Assembly: GCF_037042905.1 (NCBI RefSeq)
Contig: NC_087254.1
Coordinates: 24,614,001-24,678,000 of the forward strand
DNA: 64,000 bases
Source: Lytechinus pictus
Lineage: Eukaryota
Reading direction: 5' to 3'
Under the pieces are notes generated by a model, which was not told the origin of the DNA, made no database searches, and saw nothing but the letters and a program-made list of their open reading frames with translations. Within the stretch, counting starts at the first letter, position 1; the number at the start of each line of letters is the position of its first letter. A program made the position numbers and the translations under genes. This document shows, one piece after another, positions 12,807 to 63,913 of the stretch.

Positions 12807-15800
12807 ATGTGGATGCTCATGAGGATGATCGCCATGTCTTTGCTGGCAGGTAACCACAGTTAAAATGTGAAAGGATTTCCTTTGTAGCAAATATCAATGG
12901 TTTTTATTTTCATTTTGTTAATTTGGCGCTAAGCTATGATATGTTCCTGATGGTTATTCACCTAATATATTTGTTACCTAATTATTTTTCACACATTTCG
13001 AGTTTGAAATGTGGTATTGCGGCGTACCTTTTGAGGTGCATGTGAATGGGGATGTGCATACAGATAATAAACATGAGGGCGTGGCTTTGTGTGTGAGGGT
13101 GTGTATGGGTAGGTGGGTTTCAGGTTTTATGAATATGGGTGTATGTACTTACTCACACAGGCAACTGAATATCTACAAATGATTTTAATTTATACGTTCT
13201 GTTTAACGAAATTTATGTAATCTATAATCATTATTGAACCCTTTTATATGTGTTATGGAAATGTTAAATATTGTTGTATTTTTATTATGAAGATGTATCT
13301 TAGTCTTTTATATACTTCAATATATAATAATAAAAGTAACAACCATTACAATAATGATGAGAATAGTGTATACTAATATGCCAAAAGAACATATAATAAT
13401 GATAGGAATAACAGTATTTATAATAATTATGATCAATATTGGTATATTCAAATTGAGAATGACAATGATACAGCAATTTTATTTTTGATAATGATTTTAG
13501 TTTTGTGTCATAAACAATGACAATTGTAACTAAGCTTTGATTCCTTTGAGAATGATTGTACAAATTACCCATGCACTGTCCCTTGAAACTTGTAGGTCGT
13601 TCCCCCATTCCTTCAGCCATCAAATGATACCTCAGTTGGTCGGCAAGTTTCAGAAATCGGACGTAGTTTTGATAGAACTTTATTTTCAATTTATCTATAT
13701 ATCATTATTTCCAAGCGACCATACCAAAAGCATCTCAAGGTGAATATACCTGGGTTCAAATGTAATTAACTAGTTTTAGTAAAGGGTGAACGCCATGAAG
13801 CGGAGGCATTTAGAAGGGGTGCTGTTTGCAGCCATTAAACGTCACGGAAAAGACAACCAGCTATTACCATGATAACAATGATTCTACTTCCAGGGCTCTC
13901 AACAGTCAGTGCCTGCGCGCCAGGAGACAGCGGAGGTGGTGGTAGCTCCGGTGTCGATGAATATCTAGACACGACGCCAGAATCGCCTGTGGATCCCATC
14001 CATGCCACAATCCTCTTCATCGTATCAAATCCTTGTCGGTCTATAACTGGCCCAGATGGTTTGACCAGTCAACTGGTTCCTGGTCCCATACCTGACTTAG
14101 CGAACATCAGGTTTCCCAGTATTTCAAGATCTCTCGTGTGTCAGCTGCCTTGTAAGTGCTTTCGGGATTTCGGGAAGTTCATTGCTCTACCACTAATTTT
14201 GTATCTCTTTTATTAATTTCAAAGTGTATTTTCAAATTAAAATCATCATGCGTTTATAGTGTTCTTTTTTCAAATTCTTCATTTTATTAGATAATTATTT
14301 CATCAGTTGAATGGCATAACAGAATAAATTTTAATATTTGATTTTTTTTAAAGAAAGGACATCAGTATCGATTACTCGAAAGCGCAAAAAAATTGCCATA
14401 GTATGCTCACTCATTATTCCCTTCTTACGGTTTTTCCCCCTTTTTTTTCAAGCAATGGCAAACACTACATCATCTGAGATCACGGGGACATCCACAACTG
14501 AAATGCCGACGACCGAAGAGATGATTACAACAAATAGTGTCTCTACATCGACGATTTGGACAACAATGACCTCTATGGTGGGTTATTCGACCCCGACAAC
14601 GTATGCGGCAATGACAACACCTAGTGTATTCAGTCACCTCGGTAGGTGCTGGAATATATTCTGTCAAACTCGTGAGAAACATGTTTAGAAATGCGTACGT
14701 TATCCCCATGTAGGCGTATATATATTTTCTTGTCTTTGCCAGAAACAACAATACATTATTGCATCGTGAATTATATCTCAACAGTCTCTTTGGCCATTGT
14801 ATAGGCAATTCAAACATGAAACCTCAAATTTCTTTTCCTTAACAGGTGAAGGTCCGATAATGCTTATCCTTGACAGGTCGAGGAAGACAATCTTCGTTGG
14901 AAGTGCTCTTAATCTTCAGTTTGCGACACACCTGACCATTCCTCAATACGTGGACCCGATTGGAATGACGATAAGCACTTCCAACTTTCGGGTGTTCTGG
15001 ACAGATCTTAAGACCAACCGAATACACGGTTCGAACCTTTTGGGTGAATACCCTAGGATATATTCCTTGGGCTTGTTCGAAGGTATGTTAATTGATATGA
15101 TTGCTGATAATTAGAAGATATTTGAATGATAATAAATAATAGCGTACTTTAGCATCCATTTCGCAGACGATCTCTGCAACATTGAAAATGCCCACCGTCA
15201 AATCGTAATGGACACCACATCTTCTTCAGATTCGGACCGGGCAAAAAATTTATGTTATTAGTTCACCGATTTTCGACGAAGGCTGCTTTGTTATGAAGGG
15301 CTTTTGACAAAATATTCTCTGCATTATAGAAAGCGTCTGAGAAGCGATTGATACAATGCCCTATTGACGTTCCTTTGAACAGGGCAATTAAAAGATACCA
15401 ATGCAAGATGTGTTTGATTAAATTTTTTTATAAAACCACGTTGTGCTTTCTATTATTCAAAACTATGAAAGTTGTTTATTATTTTTTTACTTTTTAAATA
15501 ACTTGATTAAAAAGTTTAAACAGTTGTTTAATTTTTTTAAACTGTAGTTGTTAGAGTGACGGGCTTAATTAACGTATTAAAAAATGAAACAGCGTTTTTA
15601 CAGTGTATTCTACATATAATGAGGTTGAAACGGAAGGGAAACTAATTCATCGTAATATATTCCATTAGAGTCATTATTTTTGTCAAGCCATAATAGGTAT
15701 CGCTGCTTTGAAAACGTATCATGTAATATATATACATACATATATATATATATATATACATACATATATATATATATATATAAAAGAAGACTTAATAGAA

Positions 15801-18800: not shown

Positions 18801-19655
18801 TTCGTAATAAGGGGCAAAAAAGAATGTGATAGAAACATTTCAAGAAACTCTTGCGAGGTGCTATTAGAGTTGCAATTTACTAAGTTAATATTGAAGTCAC
18901 CCATAAAAAAAAATCTTTATTTTTCAAAAGAGGATTTAGTAAAATTTCATTCAGGGTTTCTAAAAAAGCATTGGCATTTGAATGTGGAGGTCTATAAAAT
19001 ACACCTAGCATAAATTTTTTACCTCTTGGATTTCTGATTTCAACAAAAAGTGTTTCTAAAACATCGTTAGATATGGTCATGTTAGCTATAAGAGTATAGT
19101 CGTATTGTTGCGGTATGTAAAGTGCGACACCACCCCCTGGTCTTTTTGTTCTATTATTAACAATCAAATTAAAATTGGGGAGTGAGAAGAGGGAACATGG
19201 GTTGTCCGAGAACCACGTTTCAGTTAAACCAATGAATGACGATTGCGGAAACTGGTTATTAATTTTTGCTTGCACTGCGAATGTTTAAATGGAGAAGAAA
19301 GGGGTTTTCCTCGGCTTTGTCTGACGTAACGAATGATCTGAAATGTTGTTCTGTGAAATATTGTGACGTAACGAGCTGCCCGCATTGATCATTGGAATCG
19401 AAATTGTAATTAAGATCAGCGGTATTGTTATCCATGAAATTTCGTATGTGTGTATCGTAATTGGAATTTTCATGATTATCTAATGTTTGAGTAGTGCCAC
19501 GTTGCGCCGAGAGAGTCAACAAGTCATAATTGTTCAAGAAGCTAAATGGAAACTAAGTTAAGTCGGTCATTAAAAAAGGGGAGGAATTAAACAATAGTAC
19601 CTAACGAATAGAATACACTATGCCATATACTTAACTACCTTTAAATAATTTACAG

Positions 19656-19686
<31 letters not shown>

Positions 19687-21403
19687 ACCGAGGGGCGACT
19701 GGCAAGTTTTGAACCTATCACCTTTAACATTTCTTAATTCCAACAAATGTCTAGGTCATAGTAATATCTAGTCTTATTAAACAGGTTCCTAAATTTCGGT
19801 ATCTGGGGCCCGATGCATAAAACTTTTTACCTGAGAAAACTCAGGTTGTTTTTACCTGAGTTTTTGACCTGTGTTAAAGTCAATGGCAGAAATCAGACTA
19901 ACCTTAGTTTTCAGTTTTTACCAGAGTTTTCTCAGGTAAAAAGTTTTATGCAACAGGCCCCATGTGTCTCTTGAAAAATGGTCAAACCTGACTCGATGTT
20001 ACAACCCAATACACAAACCAATATCATTTTTTTTATGTTGCTCACCTATAATGTTCTTGCATTCCTATTCTTATCCTAACAGATCCTGTAAGCATATCAT
20101 ACATCGAGTCTAGTGGATTGATGTACTGCGCATACTCTGAGTCAAATAAGATTACAAGACTCCATCTTGGATATCCAAAATGTGAAAAGGAACTAATTAT
20201 GTACACACCAAAACCAAGAGCACTCGCCATTGATAAATCAAGAAGGTTTGCAATAATAAAATATGTATAAAACTGGTGATGGTGTTGTTGCACGGTTGAC
20301 ATTTATTTAATTGAAAATGTTTTGTAACGCAGCTAGAATATTCCACATCGAGATGGAAAGTCAATTAATGTTGATCAAAGAACGAAAGCGTGAACTTGTT
20401 TTCGATTGAAATTTCGATGATATATTTAACTTTTTGTAGAAACGTGTAATACACAACTTAAGAAAAATATCATAGGCATCTTTTAGTCAAGTCATCAGGA
20501 ATCGTGTTTTTGACAAATCCCCAAATTTCAAATCGTCATAATAGAAAAAAGGTGCAGATGACCATCAAGAAAGCTGCTGGGAGAGGCGGTTTGCCCCTGC
20601 TTTATTGGATTCAAAGAAGTTAACAAGGACTTTTCCATAATGCCTAAACAAATCCCATCCATATGCACGTAATATTAACTCAATTAAAAAAAATATGTGT
20701 TTGTTCTTATTCAAATTATATCTATCCAGGTCACTTTACTGGTCACGCGACGGTGGAATTGAAAGAATAGACCTCGTTTCATTAAGGCGACAAACCATCT
20801 ACCACAACCCTGAACTCAGGAACATTACAGGACTTGCTGTTGATTCAGGTAAAGGATGATATTATGGAAGTTTAAAACAAGTTTGAAGAAATAAATTAAA
20901 ATGAGTGATATGAATAATATGAATAAACATTTATTCTGTACGCGATTCCTGTTCATGTGATACCTGTCGGATTATACAGCTTGCAGTCATAATAACCGTA
21001 ACTGTAAATGTCATTTACTTGAAGCCAAAGACAAAAGTACTACCTTTTGATAATATGTTCTCCTTTTTACCAATGTCAGAACCTTCTTTTTCTACCAGGC
21101 TCAACTACAGTCATCGCTTTCCTAGACACTGTTATTCACCAAGTATTCTACATCGACCTCAATGAACCCGACAATGTCGTCGAACTTACCTCGTCTTTTC
21201 CAGCCCTTGACTTCCCCTTTGTGACACAGCTGAGCGTATATGGCCTGGACATGTTTCTCACGACGTCCGGTGATGCAGCCACAGCCGGTGCGAAGCCTGG
21301 CGTCTTCTGCATGATGAACTACACCAAGGACTCTCGTGATTTGCAGTTCACCGCGGTTGATTCGTTAGACGATCCGGTCGGGATATTCATCGGCCAGTTC
21401 TAA
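12807..21403 (+). CDS. Gene A: secreted protein with signal peptide, N-terminal Cys module, Ser/Thr stalk and C-terminal YWTD-like beta-propeller, 437 aa. join(12807..12849,13894..14151,14453..14641,14846..15082,20083..20245,20730..20848,21099..21403)
   Basis: All introns are GT-AG with consistent phases (1,1,1,1,2,1), giving 1314 nt without a stop. Signal MWMLMRMIAMSLLAGLSTVSA. Thr-rich exon 14453-14641. Blade motifs PIGMTI..RVFWTD, PRALAIDKSRRSLYWSRD and ITGLAVDS. Confidence 0.85.
15785..15970. mobile_element. Penelope-like pLTR remnant forming a ~144-bp fold-back with two degenerate minimal hammerhead cores
   Basis: 15785-15848 is the reverse complement of ~15858-15928. Each arm carries an A-rich core, a ggtc-tat-gacc hairpin and GAAAATTT. 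Flanked by (TA)n. Confidence 0.6.
15981..19655 (-). mobile_element. 5'-truncated, frameshifted CR1/L2-group LINE (APE endonuclease plus RT) in intron 4 of gene A, antisense to it
   Basis: APE motifs HLNIRS, GLTETW, GGGVALY, YRPP, GDFN, IDNIF and SDHFP. RT motifs QFGFR, FLDFSKAFD, GVPQGS and FADD. Tandem 3' tail (TCTAAA)n at 15981-16003. (TA)n on both sides. Confidence 0.9.
19805..19961. mobile_element. Short palindromic MITE
   Basis: TIR GGGGCCCGATGCATAAAACTTTTTACCTGAGAAAACTC and its near-perfect inverse. Confidence 0.8.
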
Positions 21404-21710
21404 GTATTTTTAATACTAATTTAGTTTCATATTTCGATTGCTTCACCGCAAATCAATATCATGTTATATTCTGTATTTTTCTAAATAGGTAATTAGTTCT
21501 ACATTATTTAAATGTTATATTCTGTGACTTTTGTAACTCTTTGTGTGCTATTGCAACTACGTTATGTTATTTTTGTAATATTCTATCAAATTATGTATAT
21601 GGCGATTCCAAGCAAAAGCTGACATTTTCCAAAAATTCATACTGGCTCTATTTCATATCTGGATCCAATAAAAAGTTTAAGTTTTTTTCATACGCATCTC
21701 CCTATAGTGG

Positions 21711-22600: not shown

Positions 22601-23811
22601 CAGTATGTATCGTTTTAAAGCCTCGATTGTCAAGATAAATTGACAGTATAAACTTGACAGAACCCCTGTAAAACTGACAGCACCAAGTATTAGAAAAGGC
22701 ATGTAAACGTGTAATACGAATGATCATGGATCATGGATAGGTTTTTGAACTAACTGATCAATAAAGACTATTAAACATTTTTTTTAATGGCAATTGATGC
22801 CATTTTGGAATTAATGAGTAGAATTTCAATGCCTCGCAACATGATGTTCATCATGTTAAAGCTAATAACCTGATTGATCGACTGTGATAACTTGTTTGAA
22901 ACCTGACGATCACGTATTTTATGACTAGAACCGGATCCGACAGCTTTATAATCCTATGTCCTTTTATAGAAGACTAATTTCATATCTTTGTTAGAGCAGA
23001 TTAGATTTATTTTGTTCAACAAAATAATTTAATCGAAGTAACAGTACAAGTACATGTTCAAAATAATACATACAGTTCAATTACATTTCATTACAAATTA
23101 TTAAAGAGAGCTTGTATAAGGGCAAGTCCCTAAACATAGTTAATCCACTATATCATGAATTATAATGCAGGTTTCTGTACTTGACAAATTTCATGAAAAT
23201 TAATGTCTTTCCTTTACAATATAACTTTATCTTTTTGTTTAATTGTGGAGGTTATGAAGCAGTAATATGTAGTAAAACGCCAGTTCACGAATAGTGAATT
23301 AATGAATGATAATATACCTGTATACCTTATTTCCATTTTTTTTTCTTTGAAATGAAAACCTTTCATAGTTTTACATGTAGCTCGAACTTGATCTAAATAA
23401 TACATATCATTTTGAAAAGAAATTGTAAGAAACTTTGTCGCATTCCTTTCAAAGACTTGTGTCATTCTACAGTATGAAAAAGTCATTCTTATTTGTGACC
23501 TATGTGACTGACAAGGGGAATAATGTTAAGTACAAAATCGGTTATTATTTAAGCTTCGATAATATCTACGTGGCGCCAAAAATAAATTGGCCAATCATTA
23601 AGTTCTTTAACAAATATTATCAAAGATTACATACCACATGGTTTTTGTTACAAATCTATGCTACAGTTACCAATGTACCATGAAACATGATACAGTGTCG
23701 CTAGTATCGAATGTGAAGAGTGATTGCGTTATTGGTTTTAAGTAGCTGTTTTTGATAACCATATCATATATAGCAGTTTTAAAAGTCTTATTCTGACGTA
23801 AATGCTGTCGG

Positions 23812-26800
23812 TTAATCATCTTCTTCTTCTGACTCCTCCTCCCCCTCCTCCATCCCATCTAAATTTGGCATGATGACAGTTTGAATGTGCATGCGGCGTG
23901 GCGCCGTGTATGTGGATGCCACATGCTCTACAAAAGTCGGGGATGCATCCAAATGGTTGACTTCATAAATAGCCGTCGGGTTGATATTCAATAAATATAA
24001 TTTTTGGTTGAAGAAGGCGATATCACTGGGCTCATATGAACTTGTTAGTTCGGTAACTGAGTTCGTATTCAAGTTCAAGATAAATACCTTTTTCCTTCCA
24101 CTGTCGGAAAACAAGAGTCTTTGACCTGCAATGCAGAAAATAAGATACACATACACCTATTAAAATCACCAAGAAACTACGAATATTTTAATCTCGAATT
24201 CAGACATATCAACAGTTACACCGTAACAACTTTCCAATGGCTATAAGGATAATTTTCTGGCAGTTGTTGATGAAGTACTTAGGGCATTTTAGCAATCACT
24301 TCACAGACGCTTTCTATAACGCAGAGAATCTTTTGTCGAAAGCCCTTCATAACAAAGAAGCCTTTGTCCAAAATCAGTGAATCAAAACATCGGTGTCGTA
24401 CTGGACTGTGGACAAATGACATATTTGCAATTTTTTTCGTCCGGTCCGAATCTTCAGACTTCTGTCCCGGTCCACCAATTTTCGACAATGACCTCTAGTC
24501 TGTCCATTGTGATTTGACGGGCATTTTCAAAGGAATTGATGCGTTGTAGAAAGCGTCTGCAAAGTGGGTGCTACAATACGCTTTGGACATCATAGTTACC
24601 AACCAAGTGAATGTCAAAATATTACGTAATGCAATGGAGATCATGTTATACATGTAGAAGAACATGATTTTTGAATACACAAAATACCCATTTGCCCTGC
24701 CTCTCTTCCTCTTTCTCTCTCAAGATGATTGATCTGACCTGAAACATCAACGGAGAGTCCGTCTATATCTGAAAGATCTTCATTGTTGTATACTTCTGCC
24801 TTGCTGCTGCCGTCCTTCCCTGCCTTGTCTATACCTTTGTCACGTGTCCAATAAATGACGCTGATGAATAAATATATATTACAGTTTATGCAACAAGAAG
24901 TCTAGGTTGATTCAATCTTCAAAATAACGGAAGTCATGCTCTTAGTAATAAATACTATACAAAATTCGTATCGAAAAATCTTTAAGCTATCGGAGAAAAT
25001 ATACAGAATATGGAAATGAGGAAGTAACTCCATGAACAAATTTTGATTGACGAGAGATGGATACGTTATTTCTTAAAATGACTATGCATAAATAAAAATA
25101 ATAATGAATAAATAAAAAAAACATCGAATATTTTTTCTAGTTTTTTTTCAAACCTGTTACATTGGTTATCATTCTTTTATAGCCCAATTTATCGTTCCTA
25201 TATATATATATTTCTTTTTATTCATATGAATGTAGAATAAAAAACTTGCTGAATTTGAATAAATGATGGAATGAACAATAAAAAGTTGCCGTCCTATATG
25301 CGATATTATTAAAATAAATACTTACTTTTGCTCGTCGTCAACTACGATAGCCCTGGGATTGTTCCCTGTAGGATTTATAATTACCATCTCAGAGCCTGGG
25401 CTATTGAGGTCGGTAGCAGTTACGACATGGCTACCATCATACGCACAAAAAGCCTGACGAGATGTTTGGGATATAGCTAAGCCTTTAGGGCCTGCAACAA
25501 GTTGACCAACATTGTATTAAAGACGTAATATCATGAAGATAGAAAAAGTAGTATATCTGCATGATCTACGGCACACACTTCCGTGCAGTATTCACAAAGG
25601 TCACATGGCATATTCTTTTTGCAAATGATATTTTGCCTGATTAGTAAATCTAAAGGTAAATGAACTACCTTTTCTTCCATATTCATCATTGAGTTGTCCC
25701 AAATAAGGGAAACACTAAGATGTTAGGGAGCGGAAGGGGTGGGGTGACTCGCAGTTGAAACTATTTTTACATTCACAATTTTCTAATATTCATGAATATT
25801 TACTTAGATGTATTGGGCATTTGTGTTGTGCGGATTCATACATCAAATATTATGTTTATTGCAGTTATTTAATCTTGATTTAATTTTGGACGTTATTCAA
25901 TGTATTTAGGTTTTTTGAAAAGTAAGCTATAGTCACTTCAGAAAAATATGTTTCAGATCTACTGCTCTTCGGGTTTTCTTTGGTGGAAGAGACCTAAAAA
26001 GAGCTCAAAATTGGGTATGGGAGTGCCGTAATGTTCACCAGAAGATCAATCATGAATTTACACCTACACTATTCACACTATCATGCATAAAAGTCATGTC
26101 ATTTTACACACAACTTACCATCATATGTGCTTGTCCTTATCCTCACGGCATTGGAACCATCGATGTCTGCACGCCATAAGCCATTATCTGATATATCAGT
26201 CCAGTAGATCTTTTGTCCCGTTTCATCAAAATCAATATCCCACGGTTCACCTTGAAGAGATATATGAAGTTGGAAAGTGAAGGTCGATAGATCTGCCAGA
26301 TATATCTTTTTCTGTGCATCGGTTATCAGTATTTTGGTGACGAGGTTGCCTGGAACCTGGGTGGCTGTTGTCTGATCATATTGCGTCGGTAGTGGGCTTA
26401 CCGATGTACTTTGAAATGTGGTTGTGACCTCCTCAGTGGATCTTCCTTGGGTCGTCGTGGGTGCGTCAGACGTCTCCTCTTGAGTTGACGTGTTTATTGT
26501 CGTTAAACTTTCTGTTTTCTCTACCAAATGCATAACAAGAAAATCGTCAATAATAGTTAACTTGTTAAAAAGAGATTAATGTCCAGTAGGTTTTAATGAA
26601 ACGGTTCAAACAGTAGTTTCTTTATTTAAAATAGATTCAAAGTACAGCATCTTAAAGAATGTTTGGACTTGTAAAAAAATGTAAATGATCCATCGCGTCA
26701 TGCATTAATTATTTTAGCCCTCTTTTGAATTCACAAAAAGTACCCTGAATACACGCAATCATTTTAAGAAATCATAATACTTGGCTTCATCAAACATGAC

Positions 26801-29800
26801 AAACGCCAATGATACGTAGTGCTTACAGTATCATCAATGTAATATTCACAGATGGAACAGCAAATGGCAGAAGCCAATAAAGCATTTGATGTTCGTAACG
26901 CTACAACTAATGGCGGACGTCAATAATTTTTAAATGATTACTTCATACGATACACACGTTTAGTATGGAACTGCATGTTTCTTACTTCGCCAACATCTTT
27001 GTCCCATTTGTCGAGCGTGGTCAGTCAACAGCTGGTGACCTGCCTCATTTTCACACCACGATCCTGGACACCCTGTCTTGAGACACTCTGTGAGTTAAAT
27101 ACGAAATGGTAATAAAATAGAGGGTGGCCACTTCAGCTTTTTTCTTTGCAGCTACGATAGTCAATTTGAAAATTATGAAAATGATAATAATTATATCACA
27201 ATAATAATATTCGAGTGATTCTCTCCATTTAGCGTAGGTTAAGCTAGATCGTCACAGTTGTCATATATGAACGTATACCCACCGCAACATCTTGTAGACA
27301 GAGATGGATCATTTCCTTAAGAAAGAGGAGAAATATGTATTCCGATTTTTAAAACTGTGAACACGGCTGCAAACATATTCCCTTTTTTTGCATAGAAATT
27401 CGTCTTCTTGTAACATATTATGGAGTTTGACCAGAGTTTTTTTTAAATTGTAGTGGTAATTTGATTTGATATGATTGTTTTCTTTTGCATTCATATAATT
27501 CGTATAATACATTTTTCAATAACACAACAATCATAGTATAATAAAAACTGCTTTAGGCCTACATCATAGAAAAAAGATTTGATAACAGAATATATTTATA
27601 TACAAATATGATCTACTACCAAATTATAACAAAAACACAATTTGAAGGAGAAGCATTGTCATCATAAGCAGATTGCTTGAAATAAAAATGACAACCCTAT
27701 ATTTAAAACTAATTAAAATTAATAATACCTCTATACAGCAGAATTGAAAATATCAGTTCATAATTTGAATAATGAAGATGAAGATGATAAGGATGATGAT
27801 GGTGACACTGTTGAAGATGGGGTGAAGGATGAAGGCCATGGAGATGATGATGATGGTGATGGTGTAAGCTGATGGTGATGATTATGTTGATACAGAAAAT
27901 TTACTTCAAATATTCTGATAATAAGATGGATCTAACGTTAACCTTAAATGAGTAAAGAGACGAGCAATTTTTTATATGCTCTGGTAGAGAGTTCCATAAA
28001 TTGGGACCATGGTGTCTTAAGGCCACCGCACATCTTACGACTGTTCGCGATCCGATTTGGGAACAAATTGAATTTTGCTCATTTTCTGGAAATGTGAATG
28101 GAACATATCATTTAATTTGAGCTTAAAATTAATTGAAAGAATACTTATGTAAACATTTTGAAAGATTGCACGCCTTTAATTTGGAGTATAGGCCAAATTA
28201 GTTTCAAATCGTAGCCAATCGACTGCTATGACGTCATTACGACTAGATATTAAATTCGCTTTTATTCTAAGAAGGATGATAGCATAATCACAGATTTGAA
28301 CATAGGTATTCGTACGATGATTTAGAACATTACACAGTAAGATATTCTAAGTCTCAATATTAGCATCAAATTCTACTACATTTTATTCTGGAATCGGGTC
28401 GCAGACCAATCGTAAGGTGTGCGATCGCCTTTATAGATCCCTGCGCAATAAGCAATTTTGGGTTGATATTGGAAGAGTTACGTGTAGGGTATGAATGAAT
28501 AGATGTGTTCTTATAGTATAAACATTGTGGAATGAATATGGGAGCATGTTGTTTACGTACTTGAACATCAGCAGTAAACTTTGAAGTGAATTTATGTCAA
28601 ATACTGTCAGAGTCTTTAGTTTATGGAATAAAGGGTTTGTGTGTGAGAAACATTACGAATCAGTACAAATTCGAAAGGCCTTTTTCTGTAGTAAGTATAT
28701 TGTATTAATATTAGTTTTTGCACAAGATGCCCAAAATATATTGTATATTGTATATTGTATATTGTCACGAGCGAAACTGCTCTAGTTAACTTATTAATCT
28801 ACAGGCTACTTAACCACCCTGAATAAAAGACCAAAGGATATTCAAGATATAAATGAAGTGATCAATTTAATGTCACAAAATATAATAAGCCATTAACATT
28901 CAATCATTGAGAACATAAGTATATTGGCAAATGGATATTCAATAAATCTTTGCATATCGAAAATCATAAAATTGCATATATACATAAGAGGAGTATAATC
29001 TTCATTGATTGTTTATGGGAAGAGATCGATCTGAAAATAGGCCTTTAAATTATGTTACCGAAAGTCTTAATCGGGTAAATGTGGAGTTCGAAAAACAGAA
29101 GAGATCGACAAACCACGGCGACTACGAAGAGGCGACGATTACGACGAAGAACATGTCGATGATCGATGACAACGAAGAACAATTATGGGACGATGAAAAC
29201 GCGACGCACATCATCAGCGAAGACACGTGTCCTTGAAGAACGAAGAACCATAGTTGAGTTGAAGCTCTATAACTAGGAATAATTATGGTCGAGTCCGACG
29301 ACAGAAGCTTCGGCTGACTGAAGTGAGTCATTCCCCTCTGTGACTCATGACCTTGACATAGCGGGTATAGGTGCTACCCTGACCTACGTACGTTGACTCT
29401 ACATTAACCCTGGGTTGACCCTAGGTTGACAGCCGCCTAAAATAGGAATAGACCAAATACTTAACAGCAAAGACCCTAACAATTTTCTATTCACAAAGAT
29501 GTCAGCTTATCGAAATTAGCTGTCATATTATCAAAGTAAATAAATAACAAGCTTTTATTAGCATGAGCTTTGTGATAGTCAAAAAATACATAACAGTGTG
29601 GAGAAATCTAATGTAATTAACTTTCTCTCTGAATCGTAGATCGATTATATAATTGACTTTAACAGACTTGCAAAATACGTTTCCTTCACCGGAGGTATCA
29701 CATGAAATATTCATAATTTGCAAAACAAGCTTTTTATAAACGACACAGAATTGTACGACTTTAAATAGCAAAATACAACTTTGTTCATTTTAGTAAGGAT

Positions 29801-40603: not shown

Positions 40604-40655
<52 letters not shown>
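40604..40655. repeat. (CT)n microsatellite between the divergent genes B and C
   Basis: Direct reading of the sequence. Confidence 0.95.
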
Positions 40656-43689: not shown

Positions 43690-43733
<44 letters not shown>

Positions 43734-43736
43734 TTG

Positions 43737-43777
<41 letters not shown>

Positions 43778-46700: not shown

Positions 46701-49700
46701 CAAGTCCCACTATTCATATCTGTCCAAGTTCATTACTTATAATACAACATTTTCAGCAGTGCAGTCTTGTAAGGTAGGCCCACTCAAATTATAAAACACT
46801 AATCCACTAGTCTATAATAATCAAGTTAAAAACAGATCGCTTTTCTCTGAAAAAAAAAACATATTAGTCCCTCTACACAAATACAATGGCAGTGTAATTC
46901 ATCTTCTTTATTATTAACAGTCGCCTCAAAACATAGTTTCAAGATTAGCCATTTATAACACACTGTCAATGAGAGATAACAAACATAATTGGTAGATCGC
47001 TCCCCCCTACTGAAGTCCGCATTCAGTAGTTTGTAGTGGTGGGCAAATGAAGGAGGGAATGTTCTAACGCAATTATCTTAAACTATAATAAGTATTCAAA
47101 CAAACCTTAGCTAAAACCAGGGGGTGTTTCTCAAAGAGTTAGGGGTGGCTTGTGGGGTGTTGCATGAAACTTCCAATCGATTGCTAGTCAATTTAGGTCC
47201 CCAAATCAATCATAAGTCTACCAATTAATTGTAAATTTGCAACCGATCGCTGGTCTTCTCCTTGCATCAACAACTATACATTTATTTGTTTTAGATAAAA
47301 TTGATCTATAACCTGTAAATTCACTACTGAAATTTGCGAACGATATTTTCTTGAAACACTCCCTTAGAGAGTATAGTTTACTTCTAAATGGAGAGATTTG
47401 GGACACGTTTTACAAGAAGTTACAATTAATCCGATCAATCGCAACTATGGAAGGCCAGCAACATCAACATCTAAAATACATGTTTGCTCAAAATATATTT
47501 CTAGAAATGACGTATATTCATGCATTCACTGTTTCCTTGACAATTCATTATACTTCTCTTTGTTTTCAAAGGACATTGAGCAACTTTCCTGAAGGAAAAA
47601 TTGTGACATTGATGGATTTCCATATATTTGAAATCAATCGTAACTCTTTGTAAGACGGGGCCCTGGTCACAAGAATAAAAAGGTTGCAGACAGTTCAACG
47701 AAAATGTACATACGATTTTTTTAAAGACAGCATGTAATGGTAGATCATAAGGCAGCTAATGATGAAACTTATTCGAAATAACAATCTCTGATTTTTTTTT
47801 TTTGCAGACTGTGGTGTGAATCCCTGTAGAATAGGATGGTGTGAAGAAACTATAGATGGTTATAAGTGCCACTGCCCCACGGAATACACCGGAACGAATT
47901 GCGAATATAGTATGGACGGTAAGTCATCAATAGAATCAGTGTGATGCCATCATATTCCTCATCACAGGTCTACATTTGGTCATTTTGATAAAGGCTGACT
48001 TTAATTCTATAAATATATGCATGTTTATTTACTAATCCTTAATCTTAAGACTGTTAAAGTAGCCTAAACATTAATAAAAATGAAGTGTTAAATGTAGCAA
48101 GCTTGTAGAGTGACTGCACGTTAGTGGCTGTTTTTTCAGCACTTATAGGGTGCTACAATATGCACCTTTTATGCTTATTGTCGCACACCACGTGTTGTTT
48201 CTAGCACATTTAGCACTACTACACAATTTTCTGAAATTAACACTTTATCGTTTAGAGTGTAAATTTTTCAGATTACCGCAACTTCAAATATTGTTAACGT
48301 CAAAATATTTCGGTTATATTCTCGCGTTACGCTTGAATTACTGAGCACAATGACAATGGTATACGATCCAAGTAAAGGCATTACCAAGTCAATATCCAAT
48401 TGCAGATAAAGATCATTTTTAAAGAAATACGGTGAAGTTCGATCGGTTGATAGCATGTCAGAAAAAAGTTTGTGTTTTGACAGCCATGACTCCACTGCCT
48501 GAAATCAGAGAATATTCCTCGCCGGAAGGATCTTTAGATCCTCAGTCCACGACTACTTTCAACCCAGACCCTTCCTCTACATGGACCTCTGGATCGACAC
48601 AGTCATCAGAGGATCCTCAGATGACGACAGAAGCAACATCAACAGAAGGTCAAGTCTTGAACTCAGTTACTACAGAGCTAGGTATTTGATAGAGACGTTC
48701 TTATATTTATTTTTAAGTTTTATACCTCCTCTTCATCAACGTTAATCAGTAAATACAATACCATCCATGCAGATCTCGCTGTGTCAAAGAAAAATTGTCA
48801 TGACGCAGTGGGAACGCTACAGCGTACTGAGGGCGTAGCGAGAACTTCTATGGACATAAGGCCCCCATCTCACTAGGAAGGCGATCGTGGCGACCATGGC
48901 GATCTGTGTAAATCCCGCAAATCGTAGCAGAATCTTCCTCGAATTCTATTTTTAGCCTGCGAGACGATTGCACTGCAACTTCTATGCGACCGACCTGCGC
49001 TGAAGGCGATGGTAATACGCTGAAAGTACGACGATGCCACTTTCTTGCGACGATTCGAGGCAGATGTGATGCGCTGCTTCTGCGATCAAAGCGATCGTAC
49101 AACGAGGCTCATACGCTAATTAGGACCTCGGTACGGTGGTGCTACGAATGAAGCGATTATGTTACGTTCATGATGGGCTCTTGAAACGATTTCAAGCAAT
49201 CGGCATACTAATCGCGGCACATGGCACATTTTTCAGTCGATTGCCAACCTCCGACCAACATGGATGTCCAGAATTAGGTTGGACTTATACATCTTGGCAT
49301 TCTAAAAGAACATCAGTTAAAAGTTGAATGCGAGGACAGGAGAAGGAGGAGGCCAAAAAGATACAGGGTCCGATCCTGGCTGTCACCTAAGTCATAATAT
49401 ACAATATTTCTAAAATTCATTCAAAAGATGTCGATGAGCCTAATAGTTAATATGAGGGATGCATCCAGAATTTCATAAAAGAGCATAAAAATCTTTGATA
49501 TTCTGTTTATTTTTTTCCACAAAGTTTGTCACTCAAAAATATTTGGTAAATTCCTTTCAAATTTGCTGACAAGAAGTAGTCTACTGATGTGAGAGCACGC
49601 ATAAAAAGGGAGGGGGAGGGGGGCACAATGCCAGAATCTCCCTAAAGATTGCCTTTCCCAATCAATACATTAGTGATCGCATCATTAACAAAATTTGATG

Positions 49701-52700
49701 TTGTCTACTGTCACTGTGGTTAGAATTCAATTTTTTTTTCAAAACATAATCAATTTATTTATTTCTGCAGAGGTAACTCATTTCGTCATCAAGACATGTG
49801 AGCGTTTTTTTTCTCTTTCCAGCTGGCTAAGCAGTAAGAATTCCATCCTCCTCCTGTACCCCCTCCTCTTCCTCCTTTACCTCCTCCTCCTCTACCACCA
49901 CCATAACCCCTTGATCTTCCTCTTCGACCGCCGGCCTAAGAGGGGTAGCTTGGGCAGCTTTCCCTTTTCTGGTCCTTTTTCTGGGAGGTATGTTTGAAAA
50001 CGCCGTGGTATCGCCTCGTAATCTGTTGCAAATATGATAATCCGCCACCATCGGCACGGCGTTTTATAGCAGCGCGGACGGTTGTTGCGCAATCGCTGCC
50101 CAGTCATCAGCGGCGCAGCAAAAGCGCAACGCGAACGCCTGTAGCGGGCTGAGAACGTGTGCCACATGCCACCCAAAGAAGGAAGCGTCGTGGTGGAAGC
50201 TGTGTGAAGCGTGTCGAGCGCAAGGCATTCGCCTTGTAAACGGAAGCAGCGTAGCAGAATTGTCTTGGGAACGGGCCTGAAAACCACGGGCGATCGGTGC
50301 CGCTTTTAATGCGCTTATACTACGCTTTATGCGTTGGGGCTCCGTTACAGCTACGAATATGTCGTTTGTAATACGCTCATGACTCGATTGTGATGCGCTT
50401 TAGCACCTCCGCGATCTCGCTACGTAAGTTTTGAACATGTTCAAAATTTTGTGGCGACCATAAAGATGGTGGCGATCCTTGCCGCTTCAGAAAAGATCAA
50501 GGTACGACGGAGAAGATTGAAAAGATCAAGGCACGATCAAGCCACGTTATACCACGCTTTGTCGATTTTTGACGATCGCAGTGGAATCGACATCTAGTGA
50601 GATGGGGGTATAACGTAGTTTACATGATATCTGGACCCCGTCTAACAAAGAGTTGCGATCAATCGCAAATGTGGACGGCCAGCAAGGTCAACATGTATTG
50701 TGCATGTTTGTTCAAAATATTTTCTAGCTATGATGTATATTCATGCATTAATTATTTTCTTAATAATTCACTATGCTTCTCTTTGTTTACAAAGGACATT
50801 GTGCAAATTTCCTGTAGAAAAATGTATGACACTGATGGATTTCCATAGAGTTACGATTAATTGGATCAATCACAACTCTTTGTAAGACGGGCCCCTGGAG
50901 ACCTATTTTCCGCCACGTTAACATGTTCACAGTCCTGTTAGCGCCGTCTGAGCAGTACGTAGTAATGACAATAAAATTAAATACTTTTTTTTAATAACTT
51001 TCAACAACACTAATTCTCAACGGCAGATCAACAAACTAGTGATTCGACAACCTTGGATGTATCATCTAACCCTTCTACTGTAACCTCTACACCCCTTCAA
51101 GTGACCACCACCCACCATCCAATAATGTCTACTACGAGCGAAAACAGTCCGTCTCCAATGTCCACGCCGCGTGCCACATCAAACATGATGACGCCGACGA
51201 ATAGAATGACAACGACCATGACGACGGGTTACTCTACAACAGGAGCGCATGAAGGTGAAGAAACGACTGCGAAACCAGAATCTTCGGCTACCACTACGGA
51301 GACGGGAACAACGAATTCAGGTTTATTGATAATTTTCACCTATCTAAACGTTTGTATCCTCGCGAAGCACAACTTTGACCTTTCATAAATTATCTACTAT
51401 TAAAATTCGCATTATTTTACTTCAGTATCTATTTTTTTCCGATTGTAGATTTTCAAAATAACAATAATCAATTAATTATTTAACATGAGACGAGGTTAAA
51501 TAAAATGAAACAAGCTTAATTGAAGCACGTACATTGAGGTATGTGATTGAATAAAATGAAAAAGACCAAACACCCTGAAAAAAATACAATCATTTATAAT
51601 TATTTCTTCTAACTTCAAATTAAGTTTCAAAATTTTAAAATGTTACTGTTTCTAAGAGCAATCTCCCATCAAGCACCTAGCTTTTAAGACGAAAGTTGTG
51701 ACGCCTTGGTACAGGTATCAAATGTTGCAGAATATCTTGCAGTCTAGCTACTTGCATACTGTCCCCAGAAAAGCAAATTCATGTATGAATGAAATGCAAA
51801 TGGCCTTTTTCGACAAAATTAAGAAATTGTGATATTTTCAAGGAGGATACTTGCAATTGAAGAATGGTATTTTGGCTATTTAACCGAAGAGTAAAGAATG
51901 ACTACGACAACAGTGGCATAAAGAGTATATTGAGTTAAATAATTGTCGGAATTTGTTGCACATAGAACACGGCTCTAATAACATTGCGTAATGTTCCATG
52001 CATTGCTGATTTTCTCACAGTAGGAACCCCAGCAATTATTGGAATTGATGAGTGTAGCGGAGACATACTCATATTTGATCTCGGTTCTATAAACTCGCCG
52101 ATAGTTTTAGAGAATGCCTTATTGAGCGAGTGGCCAGAAGACATAGCCTTTGAATCTGACGAAAAACGGGTGTACTGGTTACGAACTGGATACACAGATG
52201 AGATTTGCAGTGCGACGCCTGATGGGAATAATAAGATTTGTTGGGATGTTACAGGAAACTGCTACGGTGAGATAACATTCATTCCATAATCAATTTCATA
52301 AAATGAATGAATAAATACATATATGAATAAATATATGAGTAAATAATACATTTATGAATTAATAAAAAGATATGAAGAAAAAATAAACAATCAAATAGAT
52401 AAATAACTAAATATACGGATAAGAAAATATATTAACAAATACATAAATGAATGGATGAAAGAACGAATAAATACATAAATAAATAATGATTAACATTACA
52501 TAGTCTTTACAGAAGCATTAAAATTATGTTTTCTCCTGCCTTGGAGGCGAGCATAACCAAACATTACCAAAATGTATTGACGTATCTAATTTTTATCATA
52601 CAGGTGCACTAGATGACGAGAATTATTTCCAAATTGTTCTGAAAGAGATATAAGCTTGTTCAACCTGTTTCTTAGTTTACATTGTTGCATTTTGTTCCGG

Positions 52701-55594
52701 TTGGAAGGTGCGGATCAAAGGATTGCAATCAAAGGATACGAACCTTCTTTTAGTTTATTTTGTCCCCTCTCTCTCTCTCTTCCACCTGTTTTTTTTTCTT
52801 TTAATATTAATGCCTTTATTGTTGTCATGTTCATGAGTGTTATTATAATTATTATCGCAATCACTGTCGTTGTTTTCATTATTTTTCGCAGAGCCAGGAG
52901 GGATTGACATTGATATGGTGAAGAGGAAGGTTTACTTCTTCTGTGAGGAATCTGTCTCTTCTATGAACTTAGATGGTACTGCATTGCTATTAAATGTTAC
53001 TCACACTGGAAGTCGAGACATAGATTACATGGCAGTTACAGACCGGTAGGGTTCACGGATTCATTTCATTATTATTTGTATTCGTATTCGGTATTTCAAA
53101 TATAGGCCCTTTTCTGTAAGCGCCGCTTCTGGTATTTTCCGTCTTTGACATTTTGATATAAATATACTCTGTATAGGAAGATAGGGTCTGATGATTTTAA
53201 TCGTAAGGCGTAGTCCTGTGTTTTCTCTCCATGTTATAATTTCCATCATGGATGTATTATAGTCGTTCCCTCTGAACAATAGGCAATAGATTAAAGGTCA
53301 ACCCCAGAAATAAATGTTGATTTGAATAAAAAGAGAAATATCGAACTAGCATAAGATAAGAAAGTTATAACATTTTAAAGTTTCGCTTATTTTCCACAAA
53401 ACAGTGATATGCACAACTCAGTGACATGTAAATGAGACAAACGATGATGTCCCTCACCCACTATTTCTTTTGTTTTTTATTGTTTGAATTTTATTATACA
53501 ATATTTCATTTTTTACAGATTTGACAATAAGGACCAACTTGACTGAATCATATAGTATTAAACAATGGTAATTCCACATGATGGGGAGGAATTAATCGTT
53601 GTATCACTTTTATTTTTTCCCATTTCATATAGTAAAATACAAAAGAAATAGTGAGTGGATGGTGTCATCAGTCTCCTCATTTGCATACCGACCGGGATGT
53701 GCATATAACTGTTTTGTGAAATTAAGCGAAACTTTAAAATGTCATAACTTTCTTATTTTACATCCGATTTTTGATGAAGTTTTCAGTGTTATGCTTGTTG
53801 GAGTTTTCTCTTTTTATTCAAATCAACATTTTGTTGTGGTGGACTTGTCCTTTAAACATAATTTTTAAAACATAAACCTGATAAACTAAGACCTCAAAAA
53901 ATAACAATGCTTCACCACGGTAATGAGTAACGACAGTGGCGTACCTAGGATTTTCCACAAGGGGGGCAATTTCGTCCGCCAAAAAATTTGACATGCAAAA
54001 AAAAAAAAAAAGGTCTTCAGGACTCGTCAGGGGGGGCAGGGATATGTCCCTTGCATGGGTTGTGACTCGTCAGGGGGGCAGTCTGCCCCCCCCTTAGGTA
54101 CGCTAGTGAGTAACGATCTCTTTAATAAGATATTTGTCATGCTTGTGTATGATCTAAACTTATATTGATATCCAACTCGAAAAAGGGGTCAGATTAGACA
54201 TGTTTCAACCCCCTATGTAGCCCTATAACGAACACCTTCCAACCTCCTTACTTTTGTGCAACCCTTTCTATTGTCTCCGTGATTATACCTGTGTATTTTT
54301 TTTCACAGAGCAATCTTCTGGGCAACCTCAAAGAAGATATACAAGTCAACCCCGCAGCGAACCAGTACAATGCTTTCGATCCCATCTCAATCCATTCAGG
54401 AAATACGTGGACTTTCCGTTGATTTTGTCCGTAAGTAGCTCTTGAATCATAATAATCTGAATTGCCACCCCCCCCCCCAAAAAAAAAGTCCTTGCTTCTA
54501 ATGTTATATTTATGGGCAAGGTTATTGATTGATTGGTTGGGATTTTTTACCTGATTGCTAAGAAAGCATGAATGCTTGTAAGCAAGCAACCAGAGGACCG
54601 ACGGCTTAAGGTCCTCTCCGAAGGACCTGGTAATGATGATTAATGCCTTACCAAAGGGCAATAGCGCACCAAGTGTGAATCGAACCCGGGTCACCGGAAT
54701 ACGAATCCCCCGCTCTACCGACTGAGCTATCGCGCCTATAAAATGTGTTACTTGATTTCTACCAATGGCAGGTCATTGAAACTTTCTTCACTCCCATTCC
54801 CTCCGCCCTATGCTCCCATATTATCTAATATTTAACGTTGTGATGTTCTGTATTATGCCTAGAAATTCAATTGAATAGACAACCATTTTCATAATAGTAT
54901 TTTAAAGAATTAAATCCTAGGGGTAGATGTACACCCCTTCTAATTTTGGGAAGATATTTTAAGCTGCTTAACATTGACTTTGATACAAGCCCTATCCGAC
55001 CGGATTTTATATATTTTCCTTCTGCCATAGACTAGGCCTTTACCTTTGAAAATGATTTAAATAAATGCAATGACAGTACAATATTTCTGTTTCGTAAACC
55101 AAAAAATACCCCTTTTACTATATAGAACATGGTCCCCGTTTCACAATAAAGATTAGAAATAGCAAGTTGCATCGGAAAGACTGTTTTCATGGCTAACGTA
55201 TTCTCAGTGCTAGTCAGGCAGTCAAGCGTCACAAAATGCCCAATCATAAACAATTAACTTGTATAAATGCATTTTCTAATAATTTTGGCCCACATAACCA
55301 CATCACTATTTTGATACATATATGTACACTTATTAATTCGCAGGAAATCGAGTTTTCTTCGTCTTAGATTTTTTCAATGGAAACGTCGATATCATGCAAA
55401 TGGATCTCTCCGGAAACGACATGGTGCTCAATGTTACTTTGTCAGAGGGACTGGTGTATGTGGATGATTTTATGGTGTTTAAAGGCAAGATCTACTACAC
55501 GTCACAAGGGAATATATATCAGGTTAACAAAGGAGCAATTACCGATCACATAGAATGCCCTCATGTCAGTGAAATATATCTTGGAGAATATTAA
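41642..55594 (+). CDS. Gene C: secreted paralog with N-terminal Cys module, EGF domain, long Ser/Thr stalk and Cys-rich YWTD-like propeller, 551 aa. join(41642..41656,42723..42774,45243..45455,47808..47918,48484..48681,51027..51320,52021..52266,52892..53045,54309..54430,55344..55594)
   Basis: GT-AG introns, phases 0,1,1,1,1,1,1,2,1, 1656 nt open. Signal MNVYM|KTGRRCWTLVILLTMVT|VPSLSSG. Motifs PEDIAFESDEKRVYW, PGGIDIDMVKRKVYF, AIFWAT and IRGLSVD. Confidence 0.82.
41691..41782. mobile_element. 92-bp palindromic MITE (CACTGTAAAAA ends, TA flanks) in intron 1 of gene C
   Basis: Near-perfect inverted arms AAGTGCTAATTTAGCACT / AGTGCTAAATTAGCACTT. Confidence 0.7.
43187..43692 (+). mobile_element. 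Penelope-like element 3' remnant inserted in (TA)n
   Basis: FQDRVIWEAI at 43303-43332 resembles the GIY-YIG RxxxEAI helix. Hammerhead core at 43600-43638. (TA)n on both sides. Confidence 0.55.
43600..43638 (+). ncRNA. Minimal type I hammerhead ribozyme-like motif
   Basis: tcc-CTGAGGA-a-[gacgt/atgttta/acgtc stem II]-GAAA-ATTT-gga; stem I is tcc/gga. Confidence 0.55.
45722..46260. repeat. ~268-bp tandem duplication
   Basis: GCAGAAA.CGTCTGC...GTGTTTCACAG occurs twice. Confidence 0.9.
47120..47662. mobile_element. Adjacent MITEs: GGGGGTGTTTC...GAAACACTCCC (47120-47363) and a copy of the 50634 family (~47399-47662)
   Basis: Terminal inverted repeats; similarity to 50634-50894. Confidence 0.6.
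47808..47918 (+). CDS. EGF-like domain exon of gene C (phase 1-1)
   Basis: DCGVNPCRIGWCEETIDGYKCHCPTEYTGTNCE has the six-Cys EGF spacing. Acceptor tttgcag, donor gtaagt. Confidence 0.9.
48860..50610. mobile_element. Non-autonomous PIF/Harbinger DNA transposon (internal deletion derivative) in intron 5 of gene C
   Basis: TIRs CCCCCATCTCACTAG / CTAGTGAGATGGGGG with TAA TSD. Transposase-like N-terminus RRRRRPKRYRVRSWL (+, 49260-49390). Convergent acidic/basic ORF remnant (-, ~49777-49991). Confidence 0.75.
50634..50894. mobile_element. MITE with CTG TSD (Harbinger-like)
   Basis: GACCCCGTCTAACAAAGAGTTGCGAT ... ATCACAACTCTTTGTAAGACGGGCCC, CTG on both sides; second copy at ~47399-47662. Confidence 0.75.
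53295..53851. mobile_element. Kolobok-type MITE, same family as 38950-39550
   Basis: TTAA TSD; colinear similarity to 38950-39550. Confidence 0.8.
53934..54108. mobile_element. hAT-type MITE
   Basis: CAGTGGCGTACCTA ... TAGGTACGCTAGTG with a perfect 8-bp TSD AGTAACGA (53926-53933 and 54109-54116). Confidence 0.9.
54526..54737 (-). mobile_element. tRNA-derived SINE
   Basis: Head GGCGCGATAGCTCAGTCGGTAGAGC...GGTTCGATTC; core GTCCTTCGGAGAGGAC; (CAAT)n tail. Confidence 0.8.
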
Positions 55595-55632
55595 ACCGAC
55601 GATTCGATTTTTATTTGTGCGCTGAATTTCTC

Positions 55633-58922: not shown

Positions 58923-59150
58923 GCCAAAGTAAGGCATGGCTGCAATGAATGAATCCAGATGCCAATGATGTCATAATCCTACATGAGTTAGTAAACATAT
59001 TTCAATGAAATTAACTTGAGAATCGATATTGTTTATTCTTTTGTTGATTATTGACAAGGTTTTTTGCAGTGTATCTTTATACAACCCTTGTAAGATTATG
59101 ACATCATTGACATTGGGATCCATTAATTGCAGTCATGCCTTACTTTGGGC
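58923..59150. repeat. Inverted-repeat element (probable MITE)
   Basis: CCAAAGTAAGGCATGGCTGCAAT...GATGTCATAATC and its reverse complement at 59095-59150. Confidence 0.65.
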
Positions 59151-63000: not shown

Positions 63001-63913
63001 AGATAACGGATTCAGATGTCAAACTTTGATTTAAAAAACCCGCGCTGTTTGGACATAAGGTATCGTGACATGGCCGGTTTAACAACTGATCTGTATATGC
63101 CTATATATGTACAGAAACGCTAAACACGTTTATGTGCGGCCGGTACTGGTCTAAGCGATATCTGTATCCTGCTATCTCCATGATATCTGGAATGCTTACG
63201 TAATTTCTTGCTTTGAAATCTCAATTGAATATCAGTATCATTGTTCACTTTGAACGCACAAGAAAATGCATGTGTTTTTGTATTGTGTTTGCTTTTATTG
63301 TTGGTTGTATACCAATATCAACTATTTAATTTGATATAATACAAATGATGTTATCATTTGCCTCTACCATTGATTTTGCGTTTCAAGGACACACCAGCAA
63401 TAATCATCGCCAGCCTGATCTGTCTCCGTAAGTTAATTTTCATTCAGGTTGTTCTTATTTGAATGATAGCGTTTTAGATATTGATAAAGCAGTGAGTGCA
63501 TTATGAGGCTGAATGCTTAATTAAGCTTACGCGAATATTCCCTATCAATACTTTGAAAATTAATTATAATTACAATCTATGAGTTCCATGCGGCTTTTAA
63601 AACAGCCATGTGAACATGGTGAAGAATTCCATGTTTTTGGTATTATTATTACTGGAAGATGCTAGGAATCGACTCATAAACAGATATTTTTATCTTTTTG
63701 TGGTAGAAAAGAAAATGCGAAATTTAAAAGAAAGCTAAAATATCTGACTTAAGTTCGATCTATACCAGTGACTGTGTGAAAGATAATAGGTGTGATCGAA
63801 TTTATGTCGATTTTTTTTTTACCTTGAAGTATTTGGATTATCGGTATCTGGAATGTCAGAAATCACGTGTTACGATGGTGAGACTGGAGGACGTCGAAAA
63901 TGTCAATTTTCAG
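60091..63913 (+). CDS. Gene D (5' part): probable fourth paralog, continuing beyond the window. join(60091..60093,63388..63427,63830..63913)
   Basis: ATG|gtgagt, then a phase 0-1 signal exon DTPAIIIASLICL, then a phase 1-1 exon LFGLSVSGMSEITCYDGETGGRRKCQFS that matches gene B ALSVTDATGSSVSCSYETSGRRKCKFS. Upstream non-coding exon part from 60023. Confidence 0.72.
60741..61694 (+). mobile_element. HINE/Helentron-associated (pearl/Tsp-like) element with a ~162-bp tandem array
   Basis: T-run insertion site. subTIRs GTCTCACCTGCA ... TGCAGGTGAGAC. (GGC)n microsatellite. Core AGGTCAAAGGTCAT recurs at ~60951, 61143, 61305 and 61468. Confidence 0.75.
62384..62615. mobile_element. hAT-type MITE, same family as 2033-2325
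   Basis: Shared termini and internal GCACCCCC motifs. Confidence 0.55.
62703..62853. repeat. Inverted repeat with ~33-bp arms in intron of gene D
   Basis: TCAGACTATCCCCCGCTTACCGAGACAT vs ATGTCCCGGTAAGCGGGAAATAGTCTGA. Confidence 0.6.

Follow-up and report, generated by a model that had tools for sequence, protein, structure and literature searches.

Beta-propellers of the YWTD type have been studied almost only in large receptors, in which they are capped by an epidermal growth factor (EGF) module and need a dedicated chaperone; members of the LDL-receptor family, for instance, combine their propellers with LDLa repeats, a post-propeller EGF module, and transmembrane and cytoplasmic parts. 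Here, we describe a locus of the sea urchin Lytechinus pictus in which the propeller appears in a different setting. The stretch analyzed (hereafter the window) comprises 64,000 nucleotides (nt) of NCBI RefSeq assembly GCF_037042905.1, contig NC_087254.1, positions 24,614,001 to 24,678,000 of the forward strand, and all positions given below count from its first letter. It is AT-rich animal DNA in which spliced genes and retroelements are found. An earlier note on this DNA had proposed a cluster of four paralogous genes for secreted proteins, in which a mucin-like stalk carries a terminal YWTD propeller. Three of these genes, A (plus strand), B (minus strand), and C (plus strand), are intact, transcribed (or RefSeq-modelled) sea-urchin paralogues that probably encode secreted proteins with a small disulfide module, a stalk, and a single terminal six-bladed YWTD propeller, while the proposed fourth gene, D, turned out to be of another kind. 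The genes are already predicted in RefSeq, and what is new is the architecture and its recognition but not the loci. As the earlier note had supposed, furthermore, no paper on a characterized family of this kind was found in the literature by accession, locus name, or architecture.

The three proteins have their parts in the same order: namely, a short Cys- or EGF-like module, a Ser/Thr-rich stalk of 55-166 amino acids (aa), and a propeller of ~255-280 aa at the C-terminus. A small Cys module is indeed present in each protein, as claimed, but its kind differs: A has a stretch with four Cys that is not an EGF, the module of B is a degenerate EGF, and C combines a 4-Cys domain with a true EGF behind it. 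Ser and Thr account for 43-49% of the stalks, and Ser, Thr, and Pro together for 51-54%; in the predicted full-length model of C, the predicted local distance difference test score (pLDDT) of the stalk is below 30. Long, low-complexity, rich in Ser/Thr/Pro, and disordered, the stalks look mucin-like, with O-glycosylation predicted. A and C start with clear signal peptides, which are the sole hydrophobic spans in the three proteins; in B, for which a signal peptide had also been claimed, only half of it is seen. Outside the signal peptides, A, B, and C have no membrane span (the top 19-residue Kyte–Doolittle window is below 0.7) and no C-terminal hydrophobic signal of the glycosylphosphatidylinositol (GPI) type. 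With Pfam, Ldl_recept_a (i.e., LDLa) was matched neither in A, B, and C nor in their orthologues, and no NIDO, G2F, or thyroglobulin module was obtained in A, B, and C, which are proteins of 341-551 aa. No EGF follows the propeller, either; in all three genes and in another L. pictus paralogue (C5:916227-919849), the sixth blade is directly followed by the stop codon. The arrangement of a Ser/Thr stalk followed by a C-terminal propeller, with no LDLa, trailing EGF, or membrane span, was therefore recovered in all three genes as first described.

The propellers of A, B, and C are linked by gene structure as well as by sequence, in agreement with the earlier note. Their three introns lie at equivalent positions of the alignment with phases 1, 2, and 1, the penultimate exon is 119, 122, and 122 nt long in A, B, and C, respectively, and the paired motifs MYCAY/AFCAY and LYWSRDGGI/IYWTRDKGI are present in A/B. 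Over 213 aa, the propellers of A and B share 27% identity (E 8e-27), those of B and C match with E 2e-7, and A and C are connected only via B and via profiles. When the first propeller exon of B was searched with phmmer, 4915 matches were obtained in a representative protein library, at the top of which were multi-repeat YWTD proteins with E down to 3e-88. Whole-protein phmmer searches of the PDB returned LRP4, LRP2, LRP6, LDLR, and nidogen among the matches of A, B, and C; B matched LRP4 with E 1e-53 and single propellers with ~4e-12, A matched LRP4 with E 3e-24, and C matched LRP6 with E 5e-5.

Structure prediction points in the same direction. The propeller of B was modelled by AlphaFold2 from a 13-row alignment as an all-beta domain with 24 strands (pLDDT 76.5; predicted template-modelling score 0.79), and Foldseek matched this model in the PDB with LRP4 (3v64), LRP6, LDLR (1ijq), ApoER2, megalin (LRP2), and nidogen (1npe) at E 1e-16 to 1e-13, probability 1.0, and a template-modelling score of ~0.7. 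The same propeller families were obtained with the B model in a cluster search of the AlphaFold DB. In the full-length model of C, the N-terminal half is disordered and the propeller has ~23 strands with pLDDT of 65-88, matching the same solved structures as B with a root-mean-square deviation of ~3 Å. The propellers of B and C are hence predicted to be closed and six-bladed with four-stranded blades, which is the fold that the earlier note had assumed.

Complete spliced models had been claimed for all three genes, and this holds for A and C. Gene A (12807-21403, plus strand) has seven GT-AG exons with an intact frame from the ATG at 12807 to the stop codon at 21401-21403, and its translation of 437 aa is identical to RefSeq XP_063962222.1 (“uncharacterized protein LOC129270010,” 437 aa). 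Its signal peptide is typical and split by a phase-1 intron, and its propeller region of 273 aa is encoded in four exons. A search of sequencing runs with the 5′ part of A gave shares of 0.12-0.21 in runs of unknown type, which is a weak hint of expression. Immediately upstream of A exon 2, at 13869-13893, there is an in-frame ATG (MITMILLPG), and its similarity to the last residues of exon 1 (MIAMSLLAG) hints at a duplicated leader or an alternative start. The 5-kb intron of A contains, at 16500-19540 on the minus strand, fragments of open reading frames (ORFs) similar to a reverse transcriptase and an endonuclease of the long interspersed nuclear element type (RVT_1, E 4e-16). Gene C (41642-55594, plus strand) has 10 intact GT-AG exons that reproduce RefSeq XP_063961719.1 (551 aa) letter for letter, with a propeller of 257 aa; in its N-terminal part, a look-up in the ESM Atlas recognized the EGF module only. 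One repeat, with an ORF containing ...AYQPGCAYNCFVKLSE..., occurs both in an intron of C (53599-53868) and between B and C (39356-39601).

Gene B (37909-23812, minus strand) is a spliced gene with an intact frame, of which four introns are confirmed by RNA and the exon with the ATG is absent from the model. The joints 26986/26520, 26119/25491, 25326/24860, and 24739/24125, all GT..AG on the minus strand, were found in one spliced contig of five pieces from the sequencing run X1. While its record does not say so, this run is in practice cDNA-derived, since its coverage tracks the exons. RefSeq XP_054763732.2 is identical with our model of B but begins at an internal Met. The frame is, however, open upstream of this Met through the degenerate EGF-like module, and the X1 contig extends 67 nt into one more exon upstream of exon 3. 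We placed this additional exon at 37909-37829 because of its similarity to the N-terminus of the related protein P0030 (67% identity, E 4e-6 by tblastn), its good splice sites, and its conservation in Lytechinus variegatus, where it lies in a block that is 94.5% conserved with mostly synonymous changes. Its start, LSVTDA, matches the signal-peptide end LSTVSA in A exon 2. Given the open frame, the RNA contig, and the ratio of non-synonymous to synonymous substitution rates (dN/dS) of 0.22 in the two exons upstream of the RefSeq start, which supports their coding status, the RefSeq model of B lacks its 5′ part, and at least two further coding exons lie upstream. As the exon at 37829-37909 has an acceptor site but no ATG, the first exon of B is still missing.

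The long distance to the 5′ exon of B is due to a retrotransposon with long terminal repeats (LTRs) that sits between exons 2 and 3. The element is young; its LTRs of 1573 bp lie at 28763-30335 and 35428-36997 and share 99.2% identity. It carries two long ORFs on the minus strand, in which Pfam places gag (SCAN-like, CCHC), integrase, reverse transcriptase, and RNase H in this order; the position of integrase before reverse transcriptase recalls the Gmr1-like Ty3/gypsy elements. ARAGORN did not confirm a marginal Rfam match to transfer RNA (tRNA; 32.1 bits vs a cut-off of 29) at 37527-37599, and this sequence may be a tRNA-derived repeat. Elsewhere in the window, an ORF of 147 aa at 3138-3581 (minus strand), whose N-terminal stretch is hydrophobic and which has no match in Pfam, possibly represents a small gene or an exon. 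The exons of the three genes and associated features are collected in the table.

Table. Positions in the window of the exons of genes A, B, and C and of associated features (UTR, untranslated region)
Gene	Feature	Positions	Strand	Support or remark
A	Exon 1: ATG and first half of signal peptide, phase 1 donor	12807..12849	+	Model identical to XP_063962222.1
A	Exon 2: signal peptide end LSTVSA and 85-aa 4-Cys stretch, non-EGF	13894..14151	+	Model identical to XP_063962222.1
A	Exon 3: Ser/Thr-rich stalk, 63 aa, 49% Ser+Thr	14453..14641	+	dN/dS 0.23 vs L. variegatus
A	Propeller exon P1	14846..15082	+	
A	Propeller exon P2 (MYCAY)	20083..20245	+	
A	Propeller exon P3 (119 nt, LYWSRDGGI)	20730..20848	+	
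A	Propeller exon P4 and stop codon	21099..21403	+	
B	Exon 2: LSVTDA..., Cys motif ending GRRKCKFSG; upstream of RefSeq start	37829..37909	-	tblastn, splice sites, conserved block
B	LTR retrotransposon in intron 2 (8.2 kb; not a part of the family)	28763..36997	-	Absent at the orthologous place in L. variegatus
B	Exon 3: degenerate EGF-like, 4 Cys	26986..27087	-	RNA contig piece 26986-27090 and joint to 26520
B	Exon 4: Ser/Thr stalk (55 aa) and propeller P1 (IYWTD)	26119..26520	-	RNA joints; weak Pfam Ldl_recept_b; phmmer
B	Propeller exon P2 (AFCAY)	25326..25491	-	RNA joints
B	Propeller exon P3 (122 nt, IYWTRDKGI)	24739..24860	-	RNA joints
B	Last exon: P4, acidic tail, stop 23812-23814, 3′ UTR to at least 23129	23129..24125	-	Contig pieces 23129-24030 and 24001-24082; joint 24125
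C	Exon 1: ATG, MNVYM	41642..41656	+	XP_063961719.1 match
C	Exon 2: hydrophobic core of signal peptide	42723..42774	+	XP_063961719.1 match
C	Exon 3: N-terminal 4-Cys domain, ~70 aa, no Pfam family	45243..45455	+	XP_063961719.1 match
C	Exon 4: canonical six-Cys EGF	47808..47918	+	Best PDB match Notch1 EGF repeats, E 2.4e-8
C	Exon 5: stalk part 1	48484..48681	+	XP_063961719.1 match
C	Exon 6: stalk part 2 (whole stalk 166 aa)	51027..51320	+	XP_063961719.1 match
C	Propeller exon P1	52021..52266	+	XP_063961719.1 match
C	Propeller exon P2	52892..53045	+	XP_063961719.1 match
C	Propeller exon P3 (122 nt)	54309..54430	+	XP_063961719.1 match
C	Propeller exon P4 and stop codon	55344..55594	+	C-terminus EIYLGE kept in P0157 and P0164
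D	Exon LSVSG..., ending GRRKCQFSG	63830..63913	+	Homologous to B exon 2

The proposed gene D consists, within the window, of a single exon homologous to B exon 2. Downstream of this exon and beyond the window, exons for EGF (31.5 bits in Pfam) and C-type lectin (25.9 bits) alternate over ~25 kb, and this gene after C appears to include at least five units of EGF and C-type lectin. Neither a Ser/Thr stalk exon nor a propeller exon was found in the 30 kb after the D exon, and in a whole-genome profile search, A, B, and C were the only genes with propeller exons on this part of C10, the contig of the window. A fourth paralogue with a stalk and a propeller is thus not supported; D looks like a different gene with EGF/C-type-lectin repeats that has a 5′ module in common with B, and the cluster therefore holds three such genes.

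As for relatives, which were compared among camarodont sea urchins, L. variegatus has 1:1 orthologues of A (P0154), B (P0008), and C (P0157) on one chromosome, and the synteny check that the earlier note had called for showed the same order and orientation. In Strongylocentrotus purpuratus, the A-like XP_011672855 and the B-like XP_011672854 have consecutive accession numbers, and the paralogues are considered old because 1:1 relatives are present in Strongylocentrotus. A relative of C from a more distant urchin, P0164, has its unit of N-domain and EGF duplicated. L. pictus itself has further paralogues on C5: the one at 916227-919849 has an EGF and a 165-aa Ser/Thr/Pro stalk in one exon, four propeller exons, and then a stop, and the match to the last propeller exon of the other (C5:867230-880155) contains TAA. 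A protein search did not find annotated proteins of these two paralogues. When the genome was searched with the family profile, the highest score (99 bits) was that of C11:32320769-32321341, where four blades lie in one intronless open frame. In P0152 (S. purpuratus) and P0030, both relatives of B, a tandem repeat before the propeller is translated as Asn/Asp/Pro/Arg-rich or Lys/Gln/Arg-rich text; these stalk repeats were probably read in the wrong frame in the older models and hence mis-annotated, and the stalk of these proteins seems much longer than in Lytechinus.

The earlier note had regarded the family as fast-diverging, and this applies to the propeller of C only. Based on exact exon alignments with L. 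variegatus, the dN/dS calculated by the Nei–Gojobori method was 0.17 for A as a whole and 0.15 for its propeller, and 0.33 for B as a whole and 0.35 for its propeller; A and B are thus under purifying selection. In C, in contrast, dN/dS was 0.36 in the N-terminal part (the 4-Cys domain and EGF), 0.68 in the stalk, and 1.36 in the propeller (52021-55591). The last value is higher than that of the propellers of A (Fisher p 9e-5) and B (p 0.01) and than that of the N-terminal part of C itself (p 0.02).

We infer from sequence that A, B, and C are secreted. Upon secretion, the Ser/Thr linker would be O-glycosylated and form a stiff mucin-like stalk, and the propeller, like those of LRP4/5/6, LDLR, and nidogen, would bind proteins as a free head, while the N-terminal EGF/Cys module may add a second contact. 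The role of A, B, and C would then be to bind partners in solution or in association with the matrix but not to serve as endocytic or signalling receptors, and a decoy, carrier, matrix, or immune role may be envisaged.

Several observations weigh against our reading of A, B, and C as secreted proteins with a terminal propeller. The score of Pfam Ldl_recept_b (PF00058) stays below the gathering score of 21 in every member, with 20.5 bits in P0008 as the best, 19.5 in B, 12.8 in A, and no match in C. Pfam misses these propellers because a YWTD-like motif is kept in only two of the six blades in each protein (IYWTD/IYWTR in B, VFWTD/LYWSR in A, and VYWLR/IFWAT in C). Canonical YWTD propellers, furthermore, pack against a following EGF module, and its absence from A, B, and C bears on folding and stability. 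Secretion itself is read from sequence only, and in B the ATG exon was not found: scans for short hydrophobic exons with an ATG, similarity to A exon 1, and a six-frame reading of the blocks conserved in L. variegatus gave no convincing candidate, and the internal Met at which RefSeq starts B is not accompanied by a signal peptide. Also, in three deep RNA runs (X6-X8), no reads fell on the exons of B but only on repeats, which does not inform on other tissues. Finally, the pattern of changes in the C propeller fits relaxed constraint as well as adaptation.

Among the alternatives, it is possible, though rather unlikely, that a partner or the N-terminal Cys/EGF module tethers the proteins at the cell surface or in a matrix (egg coat, cuticle, or mucus), where they would function as recognition molecules. 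Indeed, the N-domain and EGF are the best conserved part of C (75% identity with P0164, vs 53% for the propeller), B and the neighboring EGF/C-type-lectin gene have a 5′ exon in common, and a stalk would keep the head off a surface; on the other hand, A, B, and C have no membrane span or GPI-type signal for such a tether, and no partner is known. Tethering refines, and does not contradict, the reading of A, B, and C as secreted stalk-and-propeller proteins.

Some members, chiefly C, might instead be decaying duplicates without function, the open frames of which have been kept by chance or recency, but we regard this as very unlikely. The 34 non-synonymous and seven synonymous changes in the C propeller correspond to a dN/dS that is not different from 1 (p 0.57), the replacements are distributed equally over strands and loops, and C has the weakest similarity to known propellers. 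Many of the replacements are, however, conservative, the frame of C is intact over 10 exons in both L. pictus and L. variegatus, P0164 is also intact and has the C-terminus conserved, the N-terminal part of C evolves at the constrained rate given above, and A and B are clearly constrained.

That A, B, and C are fragments of conventional LRP- or nidogen-type genes, with transcripts continuing into missed EGF, LDLa, or transmembrane exons, is suggested by automatic names such as “LRP4-like,” “LRP6-like,” and “LRP1-like” and by the EGF-rich exons downstream of the window but can scarcely be entertained and is largely refuted, given that an in-frame stop closes each propeller, that other X1 contigs run unbroken through the last exon of B down to 23129, i.e., unspliced for ~680 nt beyond the stop with no splicing to downstream EGF or transmembrane exons, that hidden 3′ exons would not fit into the 2.4 kb that separates the stops of the convergent genes A and B, that B and C diverge, so that A, B, and C are separate transcription units, that the RefSeq models made independently for two Lytechinus species terminate at identical residues, that P0164 ends its C-type propeller at the same motif, and that the exons for EGF and lectin are part of the gene following C, beyond a separate 5′ exon.

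If A, B, and C are indeed secreted proteins with a single terminal propeller, these ~260-aa propellers that end at the sixth blade on a mucin stalk would show that the YWTD fold can stand alone in animals and would be small, tractable proteins for asking what such heads bind. The family is uncharacterized and predicted to be secreted, with at least five loci in L. pictus, and names such as “LRP4-like” are misleading; as the earlier note anticipated, automatic annotation assigned such a name to B (“LRP4-like,” and “LRP6-like” in an earlier version), and left A and C “uncharacterized.” Since breeding and gene editing of L. pictus are feasible in the laboratory, knock-outs are realistic. A bolder proposal, which is speculative and on balance unlikely, is that an echinoid-restricted secreted family has released the YWTD propeller from receptors and from its usual EGF cap and turned it into a diffusible recognition head, and that the propeller of at least one member (C) evolves adaptively like gamete-recognition or immune molecules.

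Secreted beta-propeller heads combined with a glycosylated or extended region are known in Drosophila hemomucin and in olfactomedin proteins such as sea-urchin amassin. These are an analogy to A, B, and C only, because the propellers of hemomucin (strictosidine-synthase-like) and of olfactomedin (five-bladed) are unrelated to the YWTD type. Among short single-propeller YWTD proteins in the metagenome/genome protein library, P0139 and P0143, for example, resemble A, B, and C in being stand-alone proteins of ~300 aa with a signal peptide and a colinear alignment, but they have regular, strongly YWTD-like repeats and a C-terminal anchor with no stalk or EGF, and are hence not specific relatives. 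Nidogen, the G3 domain of which binds laminin, is similarly a secreted, non-membrane protein with one YWTD propeller near its C-terminus, and 1npe was among the top matches; its NIDO, G2F, and thyroglobulin modules and its many EGF modules, including one after the propeller, are nonetheless lacking in A, B, and C, and there is no evidence for orthology. The closest in structure are the YWTD-EGF modules of LRP4, LRP5/6, LDLR, ApoER2, and LRP2, which share the six-bladed propeller with A, B, and C and gave the best structural matches with significant homology. In contrast to these receptors, A, B, and C have blade motifs too degenerate for the Pfam cut-off and none of the LDLa, post-propeller EGF, transmembrane, and cytoplasmic parts, and carry instead only one propeller, which is preceded by a mucin-like stalk.

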